A stretch of 64,000 nucleotides of DNA from positions 179,167-243,166 of IMG/VR virus record IMGVR_UViG_3300042560_001323. One strand, 5' to 3'. Positions 3,245 through 63,995 of the stretch are shown here, one piece after another. The notes beneath the pieces were generated by a model, which was not told where the DNA came from, did not search any database, and saw only the letters and a program-made list of their open reading frames with translations. The position numbers were made by a program, and so were the translations under genes. Every line of letters begins with the position of its first letter. Positions within the stretch are counted from its first letter, which is position 1.

Positions 3245-6200
3245 TTAGATTTCCCCGCCCTTAGGCATTTTGGGTTCTTTGGGTTTAATATCCGGTTCTA
3301 CGGGAACTTTACCAGATTGACCTTTTATGTTGTTACCCGCGCTAGAGGCTGCTGTGGGGCTCTGTGGGGTGGCTGCAGTGCCTTCTGGTGGGACCATACC
3401 CACTTCTATGGGTAAACCAGTTCGTGGGTCAACTGGTGCATTTGGGTCGGGAATAATACCGTCTTCAATCTCCTTTGCCATAATTTCATCTTGCTCAATA
3501 ATCTCCTCATCAGTCTGACGAAGAATCTTGCGGCGCAAATAATCTTGTGAGAAATATCTTCCAACATAAGGCTCTGCCATAGATGCCATATTGAGCCTTT
3601 CGGTGAAGAGTTCAGATTCCTTAAGTTCAGCAAAGTGATTATCATATAGAAAGTCAAACTGAATATGTTCAGCCATTTTTTTCCAGTCTTCTGGCGTTAC
3701 GATATTCTTCAGTAAAAGTTGGGTTCTTAGGAGATCAATAAAAAGTTGAGAGAAGCGTTTGCGGAGTCTTCCCACAAATTTTGTGAACTTAACTTCATCT
3801 CTGAGGATTTCAGTTGAACGGCCAAGGTTAAATCCACTATCTCCGCCGATGCGAGTCTCTGGCACATTTAGTGCCTTATATAGATTACGTTTGAAGTAAT
3901 CTAAATCGGACAATTCGCCAAGACTGCTATTTTTAGTATAAATGCCACAGGAAAGAGCAAAGGTGTGATAGTTATGAATAGACTCGTCTGAATCAATAGT
4001 TAATGTTCCAACTTCAATTTCATCAGTTAGATATTCAATATTTGTAATAGTATGGTTATAAAATTTAGTTTCCATTCTAAAATGATGCCAGTTTTTGTAA
4101 CCAAAATCTTTAACCATATTCCTAACAATATTTACTGTAAACCCATTGGAGACGTTTACATTTGGGATAGACTTGTTAGCATTAAGTTCGCTGAAAAGAT
4201 TCCGCATTGAAATATTTTCATTGAGCATATTGCATACGTCAATTGCCTTAACTTGATGTGTGGTTTTTCCAATAACTATATTTTTTACGAACTCGAAATG
4301 TGAACGGGAAACTGCAACTTTTTGTCGCTCTTGATGATTCTCTTTATATTGTCTTGCATAAACTGGGTCACTAAAGCGCATCTGCGAAGACTCTCTACTT
4401 CTGTTTGCAGCTTCTTCCTTCATTTCTTCAGTCCAACTATTTCGTATTTGTTGTCTGAACCATTCATTGTAATCTGGGTCTTTTAATTTCTCCTGAAGGG
4501 ATTCTGATGCACCCTCAAGATTTTTTATAGAGGTTTCAATCTTCTTCTCTTTTTCATCCTCTGTGAGATTTTTAAAATGATTAATCTGACTGTTTTTTAT
4601 GTTTAAACACCATTCTTCTCGTTTTTCGGGAGTAATTGTTTCCCAGGTTCTTTTTCTTGCTTCAGAAGCCCGCTTCTTATATTCAAGGTAGAGTTCTGGA
4701 TTAGTTTCTTTTAAGGATTCAAGAAACAGTTTCTTGATTTTATTGATTTCTTTTGAATGATAATGAATATGGTCAAAATGACCCATAAAGCATAGATTAT
4801 CTGGGTTATTATTAAAACGGTTTAAATCAATGTGATGAATGGTTTGTTTTGGTTCATTTTTGTCCTCATAGATGAAATCATTACAGTAAGAGCCTTTACA
4901 GCGATTTGCAATTAATCTATGGGTGAATTTCCAAGTTTTATCAACATTATCATAAATCATTTCATAATCTGAAGAACTCTTGCTGATTTTTTCCTTCTTC
5001 CTATGAAGAGGGATCATACTTTGTCCTACAGTCAAATCCTTTGCCTCAACAAAACCCAGGTCATAAATTGGGAACTTGTGGTCGTAAGTGCATACAAAGC
5101 TCTCATCGTTATCAAGAGTAATCTTTATAACCTTTGCACTCTTTTGTGTTACTCCGGCCCAAGAAATCAAACCCGGCGCAAACTCACCAGTTGAAGGATG
5201 ACAAGAGTAAGTCCAAAGTTGCTCACCATTTTTCATTTCGGACTCAATCTCTGAAATTGTCAATTCTCTTCCATCTAGTAGAGACACTTTTGTATCCATT
5301 GATAGACAGCCCGCCGGTAAGGTGGTAACCTCAGTTCCGCGACCACCTTCTCTACGGGGGAACCAAAAGTCTTCCATAAGACTCATAAACTTACGAGAAG
5401 TATCTACCTCACCGGTAAGGCTATTGTAGTTCATCTTATTACGATACTTCATCATCTGCTCACGAAGGAACTGCTCAGCCTTGGGTTTTGGTAGATTACC
5501 TACGTCAATATAGAAAATTCTTTTTTCTGAACTTCTACTGAGACGATAAATGACTACACTATCTTCAATCATTCTAAGTTGATTGAGAACTTTGATTGCT
5601 TTATTAAGATATGAAAGGGATGTCCCCTTATTTCTATCAACCAAGCCCGAGGTACAATATGCGATGGATTCTTTTGTAAATTTGATTCCCTTTTCCGCAC
5701 CAGCGGTCATACCTGCTGCACCTACTGGATATGTTTGTTTGGGACTATAAACAAAATATTCCTCAAGTTCTGGGAAAACTTGTTCATTTGGCCCTTGATC
5801 TCCATACATTTTTGGACCAAGAATATCTTTCTTTTGCTTTTTCGCTTGACGAACATAGCGAATTTTCATTGCATCCACATACCGAATATCTTGAATTCCA
5901 GCGTGTGGGTCTTTAATGTCAATTAGTTTATGATAATAAAGCCGCCCATCAATATACCAGTTCCTAAAAATTTCGTGAGACTTTTTATCAAAATCGAGCA
6001 TTTCAAGAATTGCTTTAAATTCCTGACGAATCGCATTTTTAATTCCATCACTTGCATTAAGATTAGAAAGTTCAATCTCAATTGGAGAATCGTTTGTATC
6101 CGATACAATTGCCTCGTTTACAATATCTTCAATGGCGCTATCAACTTCGTGATGAAGCGCCATTTCCCGATAACGTTTGATTAAATCAAACTCTGTTCTA

Positions 6201-6352
6201 TAAACACCTTCAACATCAACATAAGAACCAAAAAAGCCGGTTGTCAAATAATGATCGGAACCATCATCATTATTAGGGGGGACCGGCGAAATTATATTTT
6301 TAGATAATTTTTTATCGTTATCTTCAATAGAAAATCCAAATAATCTAGCCAT
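3245..6352 (-). CDS. gp20: Portal vertex protein gp20 containing an intein
   Basis: MARLFGFSI, YREMALHHEVDSAIEDIVNEA, RIFYIDVGNLPK, EDFWFPRREGGRGTEVTTLP motifs; 1035 aa = about 575 aa extein + 460 aa insert. Confidence 0.97.
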   Translation of the reverse strand: MARLFGFSIEDNDKKLSKNIISPVPPNNDDGSDHYLTTGFFGSYVDVEGVYRTEFDLIKRYREMALHHEVDSAIEDIVNEAIVSDTNDSPIEIELSNLNASDGIKNAIRQEFKAILEMLDFDKKSHEIFRNWYIDGRLYYHKLIDIKDPHAGIQDIRYVDAMKIRYVRQAKKQKKDILGPKMYGDQGPNEQVFPELEEYFVYSPKQTYPVGAAGMTAGAEKGIKFTKESIAYCTSGLVDRNKGTSLSYLNKAIKVLNQLRMIEDSVVIYRLSRSSEKRIFYIDVGNLPKPKAEQFLREQMMKYRNKMNYNSLTGEVDTSRKFMSLMEDFWFPRREGGRGTEVTTLPAGCLSMDTKVSLLDGRELTISEIESEMKNGEQLWTYSCHPSTGEFAPGLISWAGVTQKSAKVIKITLDNDESFVCTYDHKFPIYDLGFVEAKDLTVGQSMIPLHRKKEKISKSSSDYEMIYDNVDKTWKFTHRLIANRCKGSYCNDFIYEDKNEPKQTIHHIDLNRFNNNPDNLCFMGHFDHIHYHSKEINKIKKLFLESLKETNPELYLEYKKRASEARKRTWETITPEKREEWCLNIKNSQINHFKNLTEDEKEKKIETSIKNLEGASESLQEKLKDPDYNEWFRQQIRNSWTEEMKEEAANRSRESSQMRFSDPVYARQYKENHQERQKVAVSRSHFEFVKNIVIGKTTHQVKAIDVCNMLNENISMRNLFSELNANKSIPNVNVSNGFTVNIVRNMVKDFGYKNWHHFRMETKFYNHTITNIEYLTDEIEVGTLTIDSDESIHNYHTFALSCGIYTKNSSLGELSDLDYFKRNLYKALNVPETRIGGDSGFNLGRSTEILRDEVKFTKFVGRLRKRFSQLFIDLLRTQLLLKNIVTPEDWKKMAEHIQFDFLYDNHFAELKESELFTERLNMASMAEPYVGRYFSQDYLRRKILRQTDEEIIEQDEIMAKEIEDGIIPDPNAPVDPRTGLPIEVGMVPPEGTAATPQSPTAASSAGNNIKGQSGKVPVEPDIKPKEPKMPKGGEI
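3929..5308 (-). mobile_element. Intein in gp20 (aa 349-808) with HNH endonuclease domain
   Basis: Starts CLSMDTKVSLLDG, block B FVCTYDHKF, ends HNYHTFALSCGIYTKN followed by Ser +1; internal TIHHIDLNRFNNNPDNL HNH motif; removal gives TLPAG-SSLGELSD matching gp20 TLPGGQNLGEL. Confidence 0.92.
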
Positions 6353-41605: not shown

Positions 41606-42943
41606 TAGTAACAAAAACCAATAAAAGTAAACCTCTATTGATTTCCTAAACGCTTCACAGCAGATGCTAAAGGGTGAAAATCACCGCTCAGTCTTAATTC
41701 CGCTCCACGCCAGTAATCGACGTACTCCGCCGATGAAAGTTCTTTATCGGTTAGGCTGCGCCAACCTTCCTTTAAAATATTAATAGAGGCATTCAAGTCT
41801 CTATCGTGTTTTGAACCGCAAGACGGACAAGTCCATTCCCGAATTTTTAAAGGCATCTTGTCTTCCTTATGTCCACAAGAACTACAAGTCTTACTGGAAG
41901 GAAAGAATCGGTTAATTTTAACCAGGACTTTGCCATACCAATCACACTTATACTCTAACATAGTAACAAAAGTAGACCAAGAGGCATCCGAGATTGATTT
42001 GGACAACTTGTGATTCTTCAACATCCCAGAAACATTCAAGTCTTCAACCGAAATTACATCAAAAGTTCTAACCAGAGCTGTTGAGATGTTATGGAGAAAG
42101 TAAGTTCTGGAATTGGTAATGTATTCGTGTATTCTAGCAACTTTAATACGTTGCTTAATGTAACGATTACTGCCTTTAGTCTTGCGACTTAAATGCTTCT
42201 GGGCTCTTTTGAGTTTCGCTTGGTTCTTGCGAAACCATTTAGGATTGTTAATGGCTTGACCGTTTGAAAGAATGAACAAGTCTTTAATACCCAAATCAAT
42301 ACCTACTACCTTGCCGGTAGAGGGTATTGGATTGAGTTCTTGCTTAACCAGAATAGAAACGAAGTATTTACCGGTTGGAGTTTTAGAAACCGTGATGATC
42401 CTGAAATCTGCATCCTCCGGGATTTCACGGTCAATAACAACTTTAACCCAACCAATTTTCTCCAGTCTAACCACTGAATTTTCTTGGTCTAACTTGAACT
42501 TTTGATTGGGAAGTCTAAAAGACTGACGATTTGATTTCTTCTTAAAAGAAGGCCGTCCTAATTTGGCCTTTCTTTTCTTATTGAAAAACTGTTTCTTGAA
42601 CTCAATAAAGTCATTTCTTTTTTGTTGAAGTGTAGAAGCTGAAACTTCTTTAAGAAACTCAAATTCTGGAGTGTCTTTTAATGTCTTTTCGTTAATAAAT
42701 TCCTTAGAGTTACTGTTGAAGTTTTCAACGAGTTTATTCCAAACAAACCTGCAACAACCGAAAGTCTTCGCCAGTAAAACTTCTTGCTCTTTATCTGGAT
42801 AAATCCTGAACTTGTATGCTTTTAAGTGCATCTGCTCTGATTATTGGTTGGCAATACTATTTAGTAAAGTTTTATTTTATAAGGGGAGAAGAAATTCTCC
42901 CCACCTGAAAAGCGCCAACCAACCAGGCATCTTTATTTAGTGA
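41606..42943 (-). mobile_element. TnpB-only element, copy 2 (about 1.34 kb)
   Basis: Shares both end sequences with copy 1; no tnpA adjacent. Confidence 0.85.
41635..42831 (-). CDS. tnpB: RNA-guided endonuclease TnpB, copy 2
   Basis: Same length (398 aa) as copy 1, about 47 substitutions by hand count (about 88% identity); RuvC D/E/D intact. Confidence 0.95.
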   Translation of the reverse strand: MHLKAYKFRIYPDKEQEVLLAKTFGCCRFVWNKLVENFNSNSKEFINEKTLKDTPEFEFLKEVSASTLQQKRNDFIEFKKQFFNKKRKAKLGRPSFKKKSNRQSFRLPNQKFKLDQENSVVRLEKIGWVKVVIDREIPEDADFRIITVSKTPTGKYFVSILVKQELNPIPSTGKVVGIDLGIKDLFILSNGQAINNPKWFRKNQAKLKRAQKHLSRKTKGSNRYIKQRIKVARIHEYITNSRTYFLHNISTALVRTFDVISVEDLNVSGMLKNHKLSKSISDASWSTFVTMLEYKCDWYGKVLVKINRFFPSSKTCSSCGHKEDKMPLKIREWTCPSCGSKHDRDLNASINILKEGWRSLTDKELSSAEYVDYWRGAELRLSGDFHPLASAVKRLGNQ

Positions 42944-44773: not shown

Positions 44774-45411
44774 AAACATTTGAAGAGTTTATAGCGGAAG
44801 TAAAACACGGCCCGCGCACCGGGAGAGCCGGTTTACGCCAAAGGGGGGAGAATCTTTCAAAAGCACTGCAAAGAAAAATGGGAACCAGAGCACCAATTAG
44901 AGGTGGAGTTGGAGAATATACGCATAGAACAACAGATCCTGACGATGTTTCAACTGAAGTAGAAGTTTACAAAAATCCTTCCCATTATGCTGCGGCACAT
45001 TCACCAAAGGTAACAACTAAAGACGGGAAGAAAAAAGTAATTTCTACCGGTGAACGAGCATTTAAGGCAAAGCAATTTCGCCAGCAGTTGACGAATAATC
45101 GTAAAACCCCAAAGGGAAGAGTTTATAATGTTGATATTGAGCCAAATCTCCAAAGAGACCACGGAGATACCGAGAATCTAAGAAAGAGAACGACAAACTT
45201 TAAAGGGGCTGTTGCAAATGTTCCAAAAGTTGTAAAAGATGCTGGAGCAAAAAGTGGCGATTATACGGTTGGTGCCCCCGGACAACCACAAAGAATAAAA
45301 GGAGTTCCCCATGGGGCAGGAACACGTTCTAGGGCTAGACTTTATACTCAACTACCGGGGGCTGGCAAACTTTCTAAAACAACTGGTCGTATTGTGGGTA
45401 AAGTAAAATGA
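44770..45411 (+). CDS. Putative internal head protein, basic
   Basis: N-terminus MKTFEEFIAE; paralogous to ORF 51665-52336. Confidence 0.7.
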   Translation: MKTFEEFIAEVKHGPRTGRAGLRQRGENLSKALQRKMGTRAPIRGGVGEYTHRTTDPDDVSTEVEVYKNPSHYAAAHSPKVTTKDGKKKVISTGERAFKAKQFRQQLTNNRKTPKGRVYNVDIEPNLQRDHGDTENLRKRTTNFKGAVANVPKVVKDAGAKSGDYTVGAPGQPQRIKGVPHGAGTRSRARLYTQLPGAGKLSKTTGRIVGKVK

Positions 45412-48086: not shown

Positions 48087-48562
48087 TCAACCAATAGTTG
48101 GGGCTTTTAGAGCAATTTCTTGAGTAGAAACTGCAGCCAAATCTACACTTGACCCATAAGTTTACCATTCTTATGGAGTGGACTATATCATCACCCTTTA
48201 AGGTGTCGGACGCTTATTCCTGTTATTAAGGGAACTATATCCCCCAGGTAGTCTCTGAAGTTTCCTTGAGTGTACTCAAGGCTCACCTGCTGATTGCCCA
48301 TGTTTTTGGGGGGGGGGGTTCCAGCAATTCACCCAGTTTCGTCAATACTCTTACGAGTAAGGGACACCGATTAAAACTTAATGTCCACGGGAGGTGCTGC
48401 AATAAATGCTAAAATAAAGCAAATAGTAGCAGCAAGTAAACAGGGAATCATAAGAACCGAAAAATGCCCAAGATAGAGGCGATTATTCGTACTTGTTACC
48501 CAATTAAGATAACGTTCCCAGAGGTTGTCGCCAGAACGGCGTGTAGCAATTGTAGCAGTCAT
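48087..48562 (-). pseudogene. psbA: psbA remnant: exon 1 (48381-48562, D1 residues 1-60) + group I intron + extreme C-terminal exon (48087-48145); central about 280 codons missing
   Basis: [53 protein letters not shown]; DLAAVSTQEIALKAPTIG* matches the D1 C-terminus. Confidence 0.9.
48146..48380 (-). mobile_element. ORF-less group I intron (235 nt)
   Basis: P AATTGCTGGAA, Q AATCAGCAG, R TTCAGAGACTA, S GATATAGTCC; IGS GTGTCC pairs with exon GGACAT (U-G at splice site); P9 hairpin; P9.0 AC/GT and terminal G at 48146. Confidence 0.88.
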
Positions 48563-58468: not shown

Positions 58469-58690
58469 TCAATAGGCGTGAAATACCTCTAGGATCTTAC
58501 CGTTTTGAACAATCTTGGCATGAGGATAGAATACCCATTTTGAACCAACATTGTTGATTGCATCATAAGCATCTTCTAATGTTTCGTAAACCCCATCTCT
58601 AACTTGTTCATCATCGTCATTGAAAAAGTAAACAATTAGATCATCTTCTGAAACCAAATTGGCGGGTCTTTTGTTGAAAAAGGTGAACAT
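58469..58690 (-). CDS. Early-region hypothetical
   Basis: ORF track; leader ATTCATAAGTCACC. Confidence 0.55.
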   Translation of the reverse strand: MFTFFNKRPANLVSEDDLIVYFFNDDDEQVRDGVYETLEDAYDAINNVGSKWVFYPHAKIVQNGKILEVFHAY

Positions 58691-59599: not shown

Positions 59600-59713
59600 T
59601 CGTGCCATACTGTATTCATTGGGCGGAAGAACCGCGACAGATAAAGAGCCACAACAAACCTGCCGTTTTATAGTCATATAAATAATACCAAAAAGCCTCC
59701 AATAAGGAGGCTA
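59600..59713 (+). ncRNA. Repeat module G
   Basis: TG-C-CATACT extended -10, GGGCGG-AAGAA-CCGCGACAGATAAAGAGCCACAACAAACCTG, AGCCTCC..GGAGGCT terminator. Confidence 0.55.
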
Positions 59714-59740
59714 ATGGAGTTAAAATTCAAATAACAAAAT

Positions 59741-60207
59741 TCAATAAGAAACACACCGGACGGAACGCACACAGTAAGTGCTGCTCTTGTAGTTGGTGTA
59801 GTGGTAACCACTATTGGAGAAGCGGATGCCACAAGCGCAAGACGCATTGAACTCGCTAGAACTCCAATAGCTTGCCTTATTAAATTCATTAGGAATTACT
59901 TTATATGCAAGTTTCAGTTGTTCTACTGAAGGGATAAACCATTGAGACTTATTAAACCCTTCTTCCGCAAGTCTATCAAAGACTTCTGAGAACTCTTTGG
60001 ACCACTTACAATTAACTTCCGTCGATTTCGGTGCAACAAGAAGGGCAAGACCGTTTTCTTTCTTTAGAACAATTGAACCGTCTTCAAGGGTATCACCAAC
60101 GACGGCTTCTTGAATGGTTGGTGTTTTTTATTCAGTTGTTCCTTTAGTCTACTCAGTTGTTCTTCGGTTTCTTGAATAGACTTAAGGAGTTGTTGCTTGG
60201 TGTTCAT
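59741..60207 (-). pseudogene. DUF1566/C-type-lectin-like protein, copy 1, frameshifted in an A-run at about 60125
   Basis: MNTKQQLLKSIQETEEQLSRLKEQLNKK then -1 frame TPTIQEAVVGDTLEDG...WFIPSVEQL...YWSSSE...CVRSVRCVSY. Confidence 0.75.
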
Positions 60208-60488
60208 TTGAAAAACAGTGGTTGACTTGTATAGAATACCAGATTATCATTCCCCGTCTTGCTCTACTGTGCCAGTTCTTATTGTGACACAATAATCCAA
60301 ATAATCACTATTTGATTTTCTACCATCCCTCAAATAAGACGTAACAATGACGGGCACCATATCGGGCCACTTATATGCCCCAGTATCCTCTAGACCTTCG
60401 GATACGCCAGTAACTTCTACTTAACCGCCGTCTGGGGTTTTGTAGATCTTAGTGCCAAACTGTTTTGCTGCAGAAGGACTATAAAATG

Positions 60489-60707
60489 CTAGTCTTTGCA
60501 TGGTGAGCAAGAGTAAATAAACTTCAAAAATGCCGACACTTTACCATCATCGTAGAAACAATCTGCTTCTTTCGGGATAATAATAGACGGGTTCTCATCC
60601 ATAAATCGGCCACTAAGAAACTGTCCGTATCTTAGACCCCCTTTATGTGTATGTGTATGCCATGCAGAGTTTGCATCTCTCAAAAACAATTCGGGGCAGA
60701 ATTCCAT
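60489..60707 (-). CDS. Early-region hypothetical
   Basis: ORF track; palindrome + TATTCT promoter upstream. Confidence 0.6.
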   Translation of the reverse strand: MEFCPELFLRDANSAWHTHTHKGGLRYGQFLSGRFMDENPSIIIPKEADCFYDDGKVSAFLKFIYSCSPCKD

Positions 60708-60914
60708 CAGTGGTTGGAGCGGTTGACTCTTATAGAATACCAGAATCTGTGGCCTGGGGGGAGTCGGTGTGCCAGTTTGTTGGCCGGCTGGGGGTTCTTT
60801 ATACTTTGTGATTTTTCGGTGATTCTATTTGCGGGCGGGTGTTCGTGTGCATTTGGTGCAGGGTTGTTGATCGTTTTATATAAGGCGGGCCAAGTCCACT
60901 AAGACTGGCCACAC

Positions 60915-61154
60915 GAGAACTATTTTTAATAAGAGAGAACTATTTTTAATAAGAGAGAACTATTTTTAATAAGAGAGAACTATTTTTAATAAGAGAGAAC
61001 GGATTTTAATAAGAGAGAACGGATTTTAATAAGAGAGAACGGATTTTAATAAGAGAGAACTATTTTTAATAAGAGAGAACTATTTTTAATAAGAGAGAAC
61101 TATTTTTAATAAGAGAGAACTATTTTTAATAAGAGAGAACTATTTTTAATAAGA
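60915..61154. repeat. Tandem array of 20-bp units TATTTTTAATAAGAGAGAAC (11 full units, three with GGATTTT variant) plus degenerate flanks to about 61305
   Basis: Directly visible periodicity. Confidence 0.95.
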
Positions 61155-61800
61155 AGAAATGACTATAAACAGTTTACAATAAGACTAGCCAACATAAAAT
61201 GACTTTTAATAAGAAGGAATAGCTATAAACAGTTTACACTAAGACCGGCCACACAATAATGACTTTTAATAAGATATACCAACTAAGAATGGTTCTCAAT
61301 AAGATACTTTTGGATACTATCCAAAAACACCATAAAAAACAATAATAAACGATTAAACAATAAAAAATGACCATTTTTAGTGGTCATTTTAGATAAATTC
61401 AAAACGGCACACTGTTATACGCAACCTTAAACATCATACAGCATCCTGTGCAGATTGCTCACTATACATAACAGCTCGAGCTGATTGATTGGCTGGATTA
61501 TCCTGAACTAAAGGTTCGTGCCATTCACCAGCACAAGGAGTTTCGTCAGTGAAACTCAACACAAACTTATCTGGGTTCTTAAGATAAGATTACAGAACCC
61601 GTGCTTTCATCGTATCAGAATAGGCATGAAATGTTAGAGGGTGTTGAATTTTATCAAATCCAGATTCAACAATAGACTTAGTGGAAATACCACCAATGAT
61701 TTGCACCTTGATTGTTTTCATTGTCTTTGTGTGGTTGACTTCGTTAGTTTAGGCTATGTTCTGGTTGGTTTGGTGGTCGCTTGTGCCAGTTTATTGACTG

Positions 61801-62337
61801 TCACGGTACAAATTCTACCCTATTATTAATATGTTCTTGCAACAACAATCTCCAATTTGTGAGTCCTTGTTTTATCTTTTCATTATAGTCTTCAATAAGA
61901 TAAGAATCAATTACTGTAATCTTTTTCTCGAGATACCAGAAGTGTGCATCTGTTGGATTACGGAATTCTTTCTCTAATCTCTTTCCGTTTCTATTTTTAC
62001 ATCCTGCACGATAGCATTTGTTTGCAGTATGATAATGGACTCCTAACGGCAGTTCACCTCTATCATTATGACGAAGAGTAAACAATGAATTGAGTGCTAG
62101 TGGTAAGAATAAACAGGTTTCTGCTGAATAAATCTTATTTCTTGGAAATAGCAAATCTTTATCTAATTGCCACCCGTCAACATAATTCTCATCAAACCAT
62201 ACTTTATAGTTGGAGAGTGTATGCCATTCTTCACTGACAGTACAACCAATGTATGTTGGTCTTTTTATATGAAAGGAAGGTGAATAACACCTTATAAAAA
62301 TACTCTTCCAAGAATTATAAAGTTTTTTATCTGCCAT
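61801..62337 (-). CDS. Putative HNH-type phage endonuclease (start MADKKLYNSW)
   Basis: RPTYIGCTVSEEW...F.ENYV.GWQLDKDLL....KIYS.ETCLFLP..LNSLF...LP.GV motif; start reassigned from 62481. Confidence 0.65.
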   Translation of the reverse strand: MADKKLYNSWKSIFIRCYSPSFHIKRPTYIGCTVSEEWHTLSNYKVWFDENYVDGWQLDKDLLFPRNKIYSAETCLFLPLALNSLFTLRHNDRGELPLGVHYHTANKCYRAGCKNRNGKRLEKEFRNPTDAHFWYLEKKITVIDSYLIEDYNEKIKQGLTNWRLLLQEHINNRVEFVP

Positions 62338-62338
62338 T

Positions 62339-63031
62339 TCAATAAGAAACACACCTGAAAGCCCGCACACAGAGAGCGTTGCTCTTGGTGATGTTCTGGG
62401 TACGATTATTGAAGTAGACGTGACAAGAGAAAGGGGCAGTGTTCTCGCTAGAACTCCAATACCATACCCTATTAAATTCATCAGGAATTACTTTATGTGC
62501 AAGTTTCAGTTGTTCTACTGAAGGGATAAACCATTGAGAAGAAATAAACCCTTGTTCTGTAAGTTTATCGAAGACTTCTGAAAATTCCTTGGACCACTTA
62601 CAATTAACTTCCGTTGATTTGGGTGCAACCACCAGGGCAAGACCGTTTTCTTTTTTAATAACAATTGAACCGTCTTCAAGGGTATCACCTACTTCTGCAT
62701 TTTCAATTGTAGGTGCCTTTTTGGATTTAAGTTGTTCCTTTAGTCTACTCAGTTGTTGTTCAGTGTCCTTAATAGACTGGAGCAGTTGTAGTTTAGGCTG
62801 TGTTTTTACGATCATTACAATGTCCATTGGGTGTTCGTAATCGTAATTGTAATCGTAATTGTAGACATAATTTCCTTCTGCGGTCCAAGTTTCAGTCCCC
62901 CATAATACTTCCATTTTGAATGGATAGACACTTCCATTTGTGTGTGCCTTAATGATGCCCGTAAGAACTTCACCGTTGCGTAGAGTAATCCTTACTTCGG
63001 TGTTGAGGAATTTGGAGAGATTGATAGTCAT
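62339..63031 (-). CDS. DUF1566/C-type-lectin-like protein, copy 2, with extra N-terminal domain
   Basis: WFIPSVEQL...WYWSSSE...CVRAFRCVSY; start reassigned to MTINLSKF. Confidence 0.75.
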   Translation of the reverse strand: MTINLSKFLNTEVRITLRNGEVLTGIIKAHTNGSVYPFKMEVLWGTETWTAEGNYVYNYDYNYDYEHPMDIVMIVKTQPKLQLLQSIKDTEQQLSRLKEQLKSKKAPTIENAEVGDTLEDGSIVIKKENGLALVVAPKSTEVNCKWSKEFSEVFDKLTEQGFISSQWFIPSVEQLKLAHKVIPDEFNRVWYWSSSENTAPFSCHVYFNNRTQNITKSNALCVRAFRCVSY

Positions 63032-63380
63032 TTGGTGTTGTTGGGTGAACAGAGCAAGACCTAGCTCAAAATGAAACCAATCGGCTTCATAGGCCTCGTA
63101 AGTTTGGTAGGATGAGCGGTTTTTCTTGACATTTTCGATGCAAAATTCTAGGGAATCTTTTGTGTAGTAAGATGCACTAGCAAACGGTTTGGTACACATT
63201 GCCAGGCCGTCTTTAGTCAGTTGCCAATTGCCCAGTTGCCCAGTTGCATTAGAACCACTCGGAGGAATGTTTAGTATTACAGGTAAATCAATATTCTGCG
63301 GAAGTCATTGTTCGGTAGCAGTGAACGTTTGTATTCTACGGGTAACGGATGCCAGTCCTAGTTGCCATTGTGCCAGTTAA

Positions 63381-63995
63381 TCAACCGGCCGCAAAACCTT
63401 CAAACATCGGTAGAAAAACAGGTTTCTCAATACCTCCAATTAGTTCATAAGTGGCAGACCCGGCGGCAGACCCGGCGGCATCCCAGGCGGCATCCCCGGC
63501 GGCAGACCCGGCGGCATTCCTGGCGGCATACCAGGCGGCAGACCCGGCGGCATTCCTGGCGGCAGACCAGGCGGCATAGTCTAGGGCGCGGTAGCGGCGG
63601 GCAACTTCTTTCCATTGGTCGGCAGTAAGACTATCCATGAACCACCAGAAGTTAAGGACCGCCCGGTAGTTCTTGCCGATGTATTTCTTGGGATTGGTTA
63701 GAACATCAGACGGGGCTCCAGGTTCACCATCGTTAATTCTGCGAAGAAGAACCGAATGTGCAACTGAAATACCGAGCAGTCGGGCAACTTCTTGGTCGGC
63801 TTTAGATTGTTCGGTGTTGCGGAGCTGTTCCTCGCTATAACCGCCAATCTTGTATAGTACCTGACCTTGAGCACACATACAGGTTGTTGGTTCTTTACCA
63901 TCTTTAGGTGGTTCACTGGAGATAAGACTATTCTTAAAGGGGATGTTGCGGGGATCTTCCCAGAAAGCCAGAAGTGTTTCGGCTGCGGTGTTCAT
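63381..63995 (-). CDS. Hypothetical with AAxx tetrapeptide repeats
   Basis: 10 x GCCGCCNGGNNT units; paralog of 49307-49969. Confidence 0.75.

Follow-up and report, generated by a model that had tools for sequence, protein, structure and literature searches.

IMG/VR record IMGVR_UViG_3300042560_001323 is a complete virus genome of 243,166 bp with terminal repeats of 467 bp and a G+C content of 37.9%. Its final 64 kb (positions 179,167 to 243,166) constitute the window analysed here, and the rest of the genome and related sequences were drawn in for comparison. The subject is a pair of paralogous genes, copies 1 and 2, that lie near the end of the window on the minus strand, as do the genes around them. 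Each copy ends in a stretch that resembles the variable region (VR) of a diversity-generating retroelement (DGR), a system in which a reverse transcriptase (RT) copies a template repeat (TR) with errors at adenines. The positions of the two genes, of their VRs and of associated features are collected in Table 1.

Table 1. Family genes and associated features (positions of copies 3 and 4 and of the degenerate copy refer to the genome, all others to the window)
Feature	Position	Strand	Found by	Description
Copy 1	59741..60207	-		Gene of the ~155-aa family; N-terminal helix and Lcl_C/C-type-lectin-like domain; frameshifted; 77% identity to P0001
Copy 1 frame-change site	60124..60129	-		A6 run (T6 on the plus strand); intact relatives have one A more, reading NKKTPTIQ
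Copy 1 VR	59751..59869	-	nhmmer VR profile, E 1.6e-24	119 nt running from TATTGG to CGGTGTGT; homologous to the TR of relatives
Short AT-rich direct repeats	59715..59740	-		Directly past the copy 1 stop; resemble the repeats after cis and remote VRs of relatives
Terminator-like hairpin and T run	59694..59712	-		Downstream of copy 1; DNA fold z -3.1
Copy 2	62339..63199	-		Intact open reading frame of 286 aa; extra N-terminal domain, then helix, then Lcl_C-like domain
Copy 2 VR	62349..62461	-		113 nt; diverged scaffold allele with CGG GCT TTC AGG at the 3' end
HNH-endonuclease-like gene	61801..62337	-		phrog_953, E 3.5e-57; profile positions 222-397 of 420 only
Copy 3	44785-45252		tblastn	Intact; outside the window
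Copy 4	170159-170665		tblastn	Behind a tail-fibre-like open reading frame; outside the window
Degenerate copy	41885-42172		tblastn	Outside the window

An earlier note on this DNA, made from the sequence alone, had described two paralogous copies that diverge sharply after the motif YWSSSE, and a direct comparison confirms it. Identity is 87.4% over 261 aligned nt upstream of YWSSSE and 71.6% over the 34 aligned codons between this motif and the common end TGTGTTTCTTATTGA. The upstream likeness is real, but the wording near-identical was somewhat generous. The upstream differences fall on codon positions 1, 2 and 3 in the numbers 10/6/17, with 10 synonymous and 15 non-synonymous codons. Within the VR the corresponding numbers are 14/11/4, with 3 synonymous and 20 non-synonymous codons. 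What had been read as a 2-codon indel is really two separate one-codon length differences, one of which lies inside an AAC-repeat tract. Copy 1, treated as a gene in the earlier note, is not an intact open reading frame. Its frame starting MNTKQQ reaches a stop, and the translations place the lectin-like part in another frame past the A6 run, which is one nucleotide short. Copy 1 is probably a pseudogene; otherwise slippage would be required to read it. A programmed frameshift was considered and left without support, the A6 run being out of register for a -1 slippery heptamer. Copy 2 is intact and likely starts at M57 (position 63031), giving a protein of 230 aa, comparable to its orthologues (P0004, P0005; loci L003/L009) of 226-229 aa.

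The C-type-lectin-like, DUF1566-type fold proposed in the earlier note is upheld by a sub-threshold profile match and by a significant structural match. The C-terminal part of copy 1 matches Pfam Lcl_C/DUF1566 (PF07603) with E 2.6e-6 and 28.1 bits against a gathering cut-off of 34.9. Copy 2 has no Pfam PF07603 hit, and hits to this family are precomputed for many other members. An AlphaFold model based on 34 homologues, with a predicted local distance difference test (pLDDT) score of 86, consists of an alpha/beta domain preceded by an N-terminal helix. The PDB entry that matches it best is the C-terminal domain of Legionella pneumophila Lcl (8q4e, likewise PF07603; E 6e-6, template modelling scores 0.64/0.72, 24% identity), and many C-type lectin-like domains come next. 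Lcl has a collagen-like region, whereas the family described here has a short N-terminal helix and a DGR cassette. From the profile match and the model together, the fold is of the Lcl_C/DUF1566 type; the VR makes up the last ~40 codons.

The family is large and aquatic. A large protein database holds 293 homologues, mostly of ~155 aa and from lake and other aquatic metagenomes, several of them on contigs of 113-284 kb; tblastn of copy 2 against GenBank phages gave no match. Two or three family genes stand in tandem on several contigs (the 1351-bp L034, and L022, L036, L041, L046 and L047), with identical scaffolds and different hypervariable codons. Because of this arrangement, the family appears to have expanded through tandem duplication.

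The codon usage of the C-terminus carries a distinct signature. Scans of viral contigs returned 0 loci with a single protein and only 2 with an alignment, and a metagenome scan yielded the 78 loci that were used. Together with the genome, these loci supplied 74 distinct C-termini, and a codon table was built from the 41 copies of equal length. In the protein alignment, fixed scaffold residues alternate with single hypervariable positions. The 15 hypervariable codons have a mean entropy of 1.71/1.83/0.79 bits at codon positions 1/2/3, compared with 0.71/0.45/1.04 bits in the upstream codons; positions 1 and 2 are thus close to saturated. Position 3 is C or T in 95.4% of the 615 hypervariable codons (C in 58%), compared with 59% (C in 16%) upstream. 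The bias of the variable codons towards NNC, which the earlier note had pointed out for two genes, is thus far beyond chance at the family level. The third base is moreover fixed site by site: codon 50 ends in C in 40 of 41 copies, and codon 44 ends in T, again in 40 of 41. Four-fold codon boxes have 126 C and 81 T as third base against 8 A and 1 G, and the amino acids K, E, Q, M and W account for only 2.3% of the residues at the hypervariable codons. An AAC/AAT template mutated at adenines would account for the third-position pattern, and amino-acid selection would not; the site-specific C or T points to adenine mutagenesis as the source of the signature. Codons that vary among T, S, A and P would fit an ACN template. 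Five loci with a high adenine content (L068-L070, L072 and L076) were inspected as TR candidates and turned out to be coding copies of a non-hypervariable subfamily.

A TR was predicted from the codon table, written as a pattern in the IUPAC (International Union of Pure and Applied Chemistry) code and scanned across IMG/VR. At least 120 viral contigs matched. A VR profile revealed VR/TR pairs in these contigs, in which a VR-like copy with ~20% A and a TR-like copy with ~36% A are ~600 nt apart, and all five matching records that were tested contain an RVT_1 gene. Contig L086 carries on one strand fibre-like genes, a 170-aa target, a gene for a four-helix bAvd-like protein, the TR, a 347-aa RT and an open reading frame at 2367-2990. 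The last of these is the counterpart of a gene that follows the RT in L225 (a 169,681-bp ENA scaffold) and L231 (a 247,454-bp NCBI metagenome contig), where it is annotated as a 2-oxoglutarate (2OG)-Fe(II) oxygenase. The order of fibre, target, bAvd, TR, RT and 2OG-Fe(II) oxygenase is the same in L086, L212, L225 and L231. Contig L093 has a VR/TR pair and an RT as well, and an alignment of L086 and L093 places the VR/TR differences at TR adenines. DGRs are mostly known from temperate phages and bacteria. Among deposited phage genomes, the RT of the relatives has matches of 41% at most, all in temperate phages, and no such RT was found; in the literature that could be searched, DGRs of T4-like phages or cyanophages were not described.

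The relative used as reference is L212. It was found by scanning for a scaffold 18-mer of the lineage of the present genome, to which it is 84% identical over the region of the fibre and copy 4, and its bAvd, TR and RT are intact. Between its own VR and its own TR, 19 of 38 adenines are changed and none of the 78 other positions (p = 1.2e-11). The VR and TR sites lie on the reverse strand at 2934 and 3592, and the TR contains five AAC codons, one more than the four of the VR beside it. Length differences among VRs are located in or beside the AAC tract, and a tract that changes length within L212 therefore explains these codon-length differences. The TR predicted from the VRs agrees almost base for base with the real TRs of L212 and L225, the L212 TR having one AAC codon more. 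The first lineage-specific TR pattern gave no matches because the real TR has this extra AAC codon and AAA in place of AAG.

With the L212 TR as reference, the VRs of the present genome show the same restriction. In copy 1, 16 of 38 adenine sites are changed and 3 of 78 other sites (p = 6e-7); in copy 4 the numbers are 16 of 38 and 4 of 78 (p = 2.4e-6). The pattern is weaker in copy 2, where changes affect 12 of 36 adenines and also 10 of the 77 remaining positions (p = 0.013). A direct comparison of copies 1 and 2 gives 18 differences at the 36 TR-adenine sites and 11 at the 77 remaining ones (p = 9e-5). The 23-nt 3' end is common to copy 1, copy 4 and the TRs of L212 and L225, and copy 2 differs there at 5 sites. 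Non-adenine differences, namely C/T changes and an indel, had troubled the earlier note. They are real and concentrated in copy 2, but as an objection they lose their force, being explained by another scaffold allele and drift. Half of the non-adenine differences of copy 2 belong to an alternative 3' scaffold allele, which encodes RAFR in place of RSVR. The same allele occurs in L009, L010, L001 and L014, and between the close orthologues L003 and L009 it swaps together with the 3' half of the VR. Its presence in copy 2 would fit either recombination of cassettes or the existence of another TR allele, with drift in addition.

The present genome itself lacks the retroelement. The earlier note had seen no RT or template repeat in the window, and this holds across the whole 243 kb. 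A search for RVT_1 in the complete genome found none at E<=1, and tblastn with the L086 RT gave nothing better than E 0.02. For a TR, both strands were scanned without gaps and with tolerance for changes at adenines; the best non-self site had at least 32 non-adenine mismatches, and the nhmmer VR profile matched only the four gene copies. A remnant of the cassette is preserved directly after copy 4, ~9 kb ahead of the window start. A bAvd stub at genome 169905-170101 covers positions 5-60 of 107 of the Pfam bAvd model, with three TAA stops and a frameshift; over 33 residues it shares 70% identity with the L086 Avd (E 2e-11). At the nucleotide level the genome is homologous to L212 across the fibre and the target up to genome 169957, a point within bAvd. 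Past this point the genome continues with a homologue of the L086 post-RT open reading frame (the 2OG-Fe(II) oxygenase in L225) and then with a carbamoyltransferase-like gene, as in L225. Because the bAvd stub is joined to the post-RT gene, comparison with the intact cassettes indicates that a deletion of roughly 1.5 kb took the 3' part of bAvd, the TR and the RT. Many large contigs that carry the family likewise have no RT on the same contig, which for those genomes is only a hint. No host-borne TR was found by a 42-nt pattern in 185,579 prokaryote species genomes (0 hits). A single 20-mer hit in the prokaryote genomes was rejected as a chance match inside mreB, about one such hit being expected by our own estimate.

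In a relative, a family gene far from the cassette bears the marks of a DGR target. The 169,681-bp scaffold carries the RT (P0121) and, 44 kb away on the same strand, a 154-aa family member (P0011). Measured against the resident TR, the P0011 VR has changes at 16 of 36 adenines but at just 2 of 77 other positions (p = 6.5e-8); for the cis VR beside this TR the counts are 18 of 36 and 2 of 77. Outside the VR, no nucleotide similarity is detectable between P0011 and the cis target. A lineage-specific GGT scaffold codon is common to the TR, the cis VR and the P0011 VR; the present genome and L212 have AGC. For each of three TR sublineages (L086/L093, L231 and L212/L225) there is one sublineage of the small family whose scaffold codons agree with it, synonymous sites included. 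Because of this concordance and of the adenine pattern in P0011 44 kb away, the small lectin-like genes are taken as remote targets of the fibre-linked DGRs.

Whether the VRs still change was examined in Logan contigs of independent lake runs (X1-X4) from 2020 and 2024. The phage is contained in public lake metagenomes, in one run at ~600-1800x word depth. There are 0 differences in the VR of copy 1 (X1, X2, X3), of copy 2 (X1, X3, X4) and of copy 4 (X1, X2), and also none at the A6 frameshift (X1 record 2, X2 record 10, X3 record 18) and at the bAvd deletion junction (X1, X3). The frameshift and the deletion are identical in independent runs and therefore real, not assembly errors. The consensus of the VRs has likewise stayed put, which is a weak test of ongoing change because rare variants are lost from contigs. 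The copy 2 orthologue P0005 is identical on 15 contigs from several samples. In protein clusters at 90% identity the VR is invariant, while the upstream part varies or is mosaic, and fixed VRs appear to be common in the small lectin-like family.

The sequence behind the VR is a further element of the system. A comparison of 45 nt past the stop at 114 VR/TR sites found 2-4 tandem direct repeats with a unit of ~8-9 nt right after the stop of cis and remote targets (e.g., L016 944, L213 and L225 3220). No hairpin or cruciform follows the VR of the cis targets. Analogous post-VR repeats occur in unrelated DGR phages from the same pattern search. Such repeats may be a target-recognition element. 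Copies 1 and 4 retain them (copy 4 at genome ~170120-170158). In copy 2 an HNH-like gene takes their place, starting 1 nt past the stop, and this gene may be a homing-endonuclease insertion.

Taken together, copies 1 and 2 are very probably orphaned former targets of a DGR that has been lost from this phage, and their VRs are frozen relics. Of the earlier proposal that the genes are current or past DGR targets, the past part stands, on the fold, the codon signature and the adenine pattern against the TR of relatives; the current part does not, as the cassette is deleted and the VRs are invariant. In the relatives, a fibre-linked DGR would reverse-transcribe an AAC/AAT-rich template with errors at adenines. 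The complementary DNA would overwrite the adjacent target and, in trans, homologous cassettes of small genes tens of kb away. An ancestor of the phage would have used a DGR with a TR of the L212/L225 type, and we infer that copies 1 and 2 were diversified in the ancestor of this very genome. The deletion of roughly 1.5 kb then left this genome with no more than a bAvd stub, lacking both the TR and the RT. The VRs of copies 1, 2 and 4 would now be frozen and decaying, copy 1 being frameshifted and copy 2 having lost its repeats to the inserted HNH-like gene.

Several points weigh against this interpretation. The reference TR comes from a relative that is 84% identical in the flanking DNA, and there is no TR or RT of the exact lineage. 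The 10 non-adenine differences of copy 2 may reflect a different TR allele, recombination or long drift. An invariant lysine codon of the VR (AAG/AAA) has adenines of its own, and only selection can have preserved it. Rare variants are lost from Logan contigs, and low-frequency adenine-specific variation may therefore have escaped detection. Diversification would be rare or episodic even where a DGR may exist, because the VR is invariant within the 90%-identity clusters while the upstream part varies, and cassette exchange by recombination seems to contribute too.

The alternative that survives best is that the VRs are still active and are rewritten in trans by the DGR of a co-infecting related phage or of the host. 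It draws on the remote action across 44 kb in a relative, on the TR-identical 3' end and the post-VR repeats kept by copies 1 and 4, and on the co-occurrence of related strains within the same lake sample. We nevertheless consider it very unlikely, given that the VRs are identical in contigs of the independent 2020 and 2024 runs (although contigs cannot show rare variants), that copy 1 is frameshifted, that copy 2 is without post-VR repeats, and that the 185,579 prokaryote species genomes hold no TR of this lineage.

A second alternative holds that the variants were made long ago by a DGR in other phages, and that copies 1 and 2 differ mainly through recombination of ready-made VR cassettes between paralogues or related phages. 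Such exchange is supported by the orthologues L003 and L009, which hardly differ outside the 3' half of the VR, where RSVRC and RAFR alleles are swapped at non-adenine sites. The same two alleles separate copy 1 from copy 2, and within protein clusters one and the same VR is found with mosaic upstream sequences. Partial 3' replacement is, however, equally a product of DGR homing, and copies 1 and 4 share a scaffold of the TR type found beside the copy 4 orthologue in L212, which speaks for local templating. Recombination is compatible with homing and neither process excludes the other; as the main source of the difference we give it only a slim chance. Ordinary diversifying selection on a ligand-binding loop after duplication, with no retroelement ever involved, is hardly credible: the YWSS-VRxxR stretch is the least conserved part of Lcl_C domains generally and the subfamily of L068-L070, L072 and L076 has an ordinary, non-hypervariable version, but selection would not fix third positions per site (C in 40/41, T in 40/41) in a 38% GC genome, exclude A and G from four-fold codon boxes or place differences on the adenines of a relative's TR, and it leaves the bAvd stub beside copy 4 unexplained.

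Beyond the loss of the DGR, a broader scenario can be outlined for the family. The ~155-aa helix-plus-lectin proteins could be non-virion early binders (e.g., against variable host surface or defence components) that are diversified in trans by the fibre-linked DGR. Phages without a DGR, this one among them, would retain orphan VRs still competent for homing, and these could be rewritten by co-infecting relatives that carry a DGR, making the DGR a shared community resource, and the tandem repeats could be a new recognition element that replaces the hairpin of BPP-1. As a whole this scenario is unlikely, and we offer it as speculation.

The proposed mechanism is that of a classical DGR of the type of Bordetella phage BPP-1 (Mtd, bAvd, TR, Brt) with added remote targets, and this kind of system is already known. 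The relatives have the same parts in the same order, with a C-terminal VR in a receptor-binding-type protein of C-type-lectin fold by the tail fibre. They also share with BPP-1 the adenine-restricted differences and a common 3' end of VR and TR. BPP-1 is a temperate short-tailed phage, whereas the DGR carriers described here are large T4-like myoviruses of ~170-250 kb. The target in BPP-1 is Mtd, and in the relatives the target domain is Lcl_C/DUF1566-like. In contrast to BPP-1, the relatives have short tandem direct repeats and no hairpin after the VR, as well as extra remote targets, and in the present genome the TR and RT are deleted. DGRs with multiple or remote targets have been described for Legionella, Treponema, cyanobacteria and Bacteroides, and are not detectable in contig-based surveys (PMC8144416). 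As in those systems, one TR in the 169,681-bp scaffold serves an adjacent VR and a VR 44 kb away, in a gene body that is unrelated and shares only the cassette. The targets differ in being a large, often tandemly duplicated family of ~155 aa in the small-gene region of a lytic-type phage. As a purely functional analogy, the gp38-type fibre-tip adhesins of T-even phages may be compared with copy 4 and its orthologues, which are small genes directly downstream of a long fibre gene with what would be hypervariable binding loops.

The remaining content of the window bears on the identity of the phage. The window encodes T4-type portal, sheath, large terminase, neck protein, gp8 and gp6. The gp20 portal (window 3245-6352, minus strand) has 1035 aa with an intein-like insertion at residues ~356-786. 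A match to Photo_RC at window 48275-48478 (minus strand; E 8e-7) covers the first 62 model positions and has two internal stops. This fragment looks like what remains of a disrupted psbA/psbD-like gene, a hint that the host is a cyanobacterium. Because of the T4-type gene set and this fragment, the phage is a large T4-like myovirus and plausibly a cyanophage.

Other features of the window were recorded in passing. A TnpB/IS605 OrfB (Cas12f-like) gene lies at window 41635-42831 on the minus strand, and a similar gene is found at L225 8516-9050, 3.5 kb past the DGR cassette. Between copies 1 and 2, a 20-bp unit is repeated 12.2 times (96% match) at 60915-61158, followed by a 60-bp unit repeated 2.2 times at 61144-61274. 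The motif GGTATTCTATA, inside a longer conserved ~20-mer, occurs at 58525, 59080, 59516, 60230 and 60731 (minus strand), upstream of consecutive small minus-strand genes that include copy 1. It has 6 hits against 1.7 expected and may be a phage promoter of the small-gene block. An open reading frame at 63381-63995 (minus strand; 204 aa, phrog_8332) contains a 12/36-nt tandem repeat at 63453-63576 that encodes an alanine-rich repeat of the AAGSAAW type.

The findings concern both the phages and the retroelement. Classical DGRs occur beside the tail fibre in a clade of large T4-like phages from fresh water that are probably cyanophages, and a single TR serves the many copies of a family of small lectin-like genes located elsewhere in the genome. 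The present genome documents the death of a DGR: the TR and RT were cleanly deleted, and in a lake population the orphaned VRs have not changed over years. Such VRs are recognisable from their sequence alone through columns of NNC/NNT codons and could help to reveal former DGR activity and to predict TRs.

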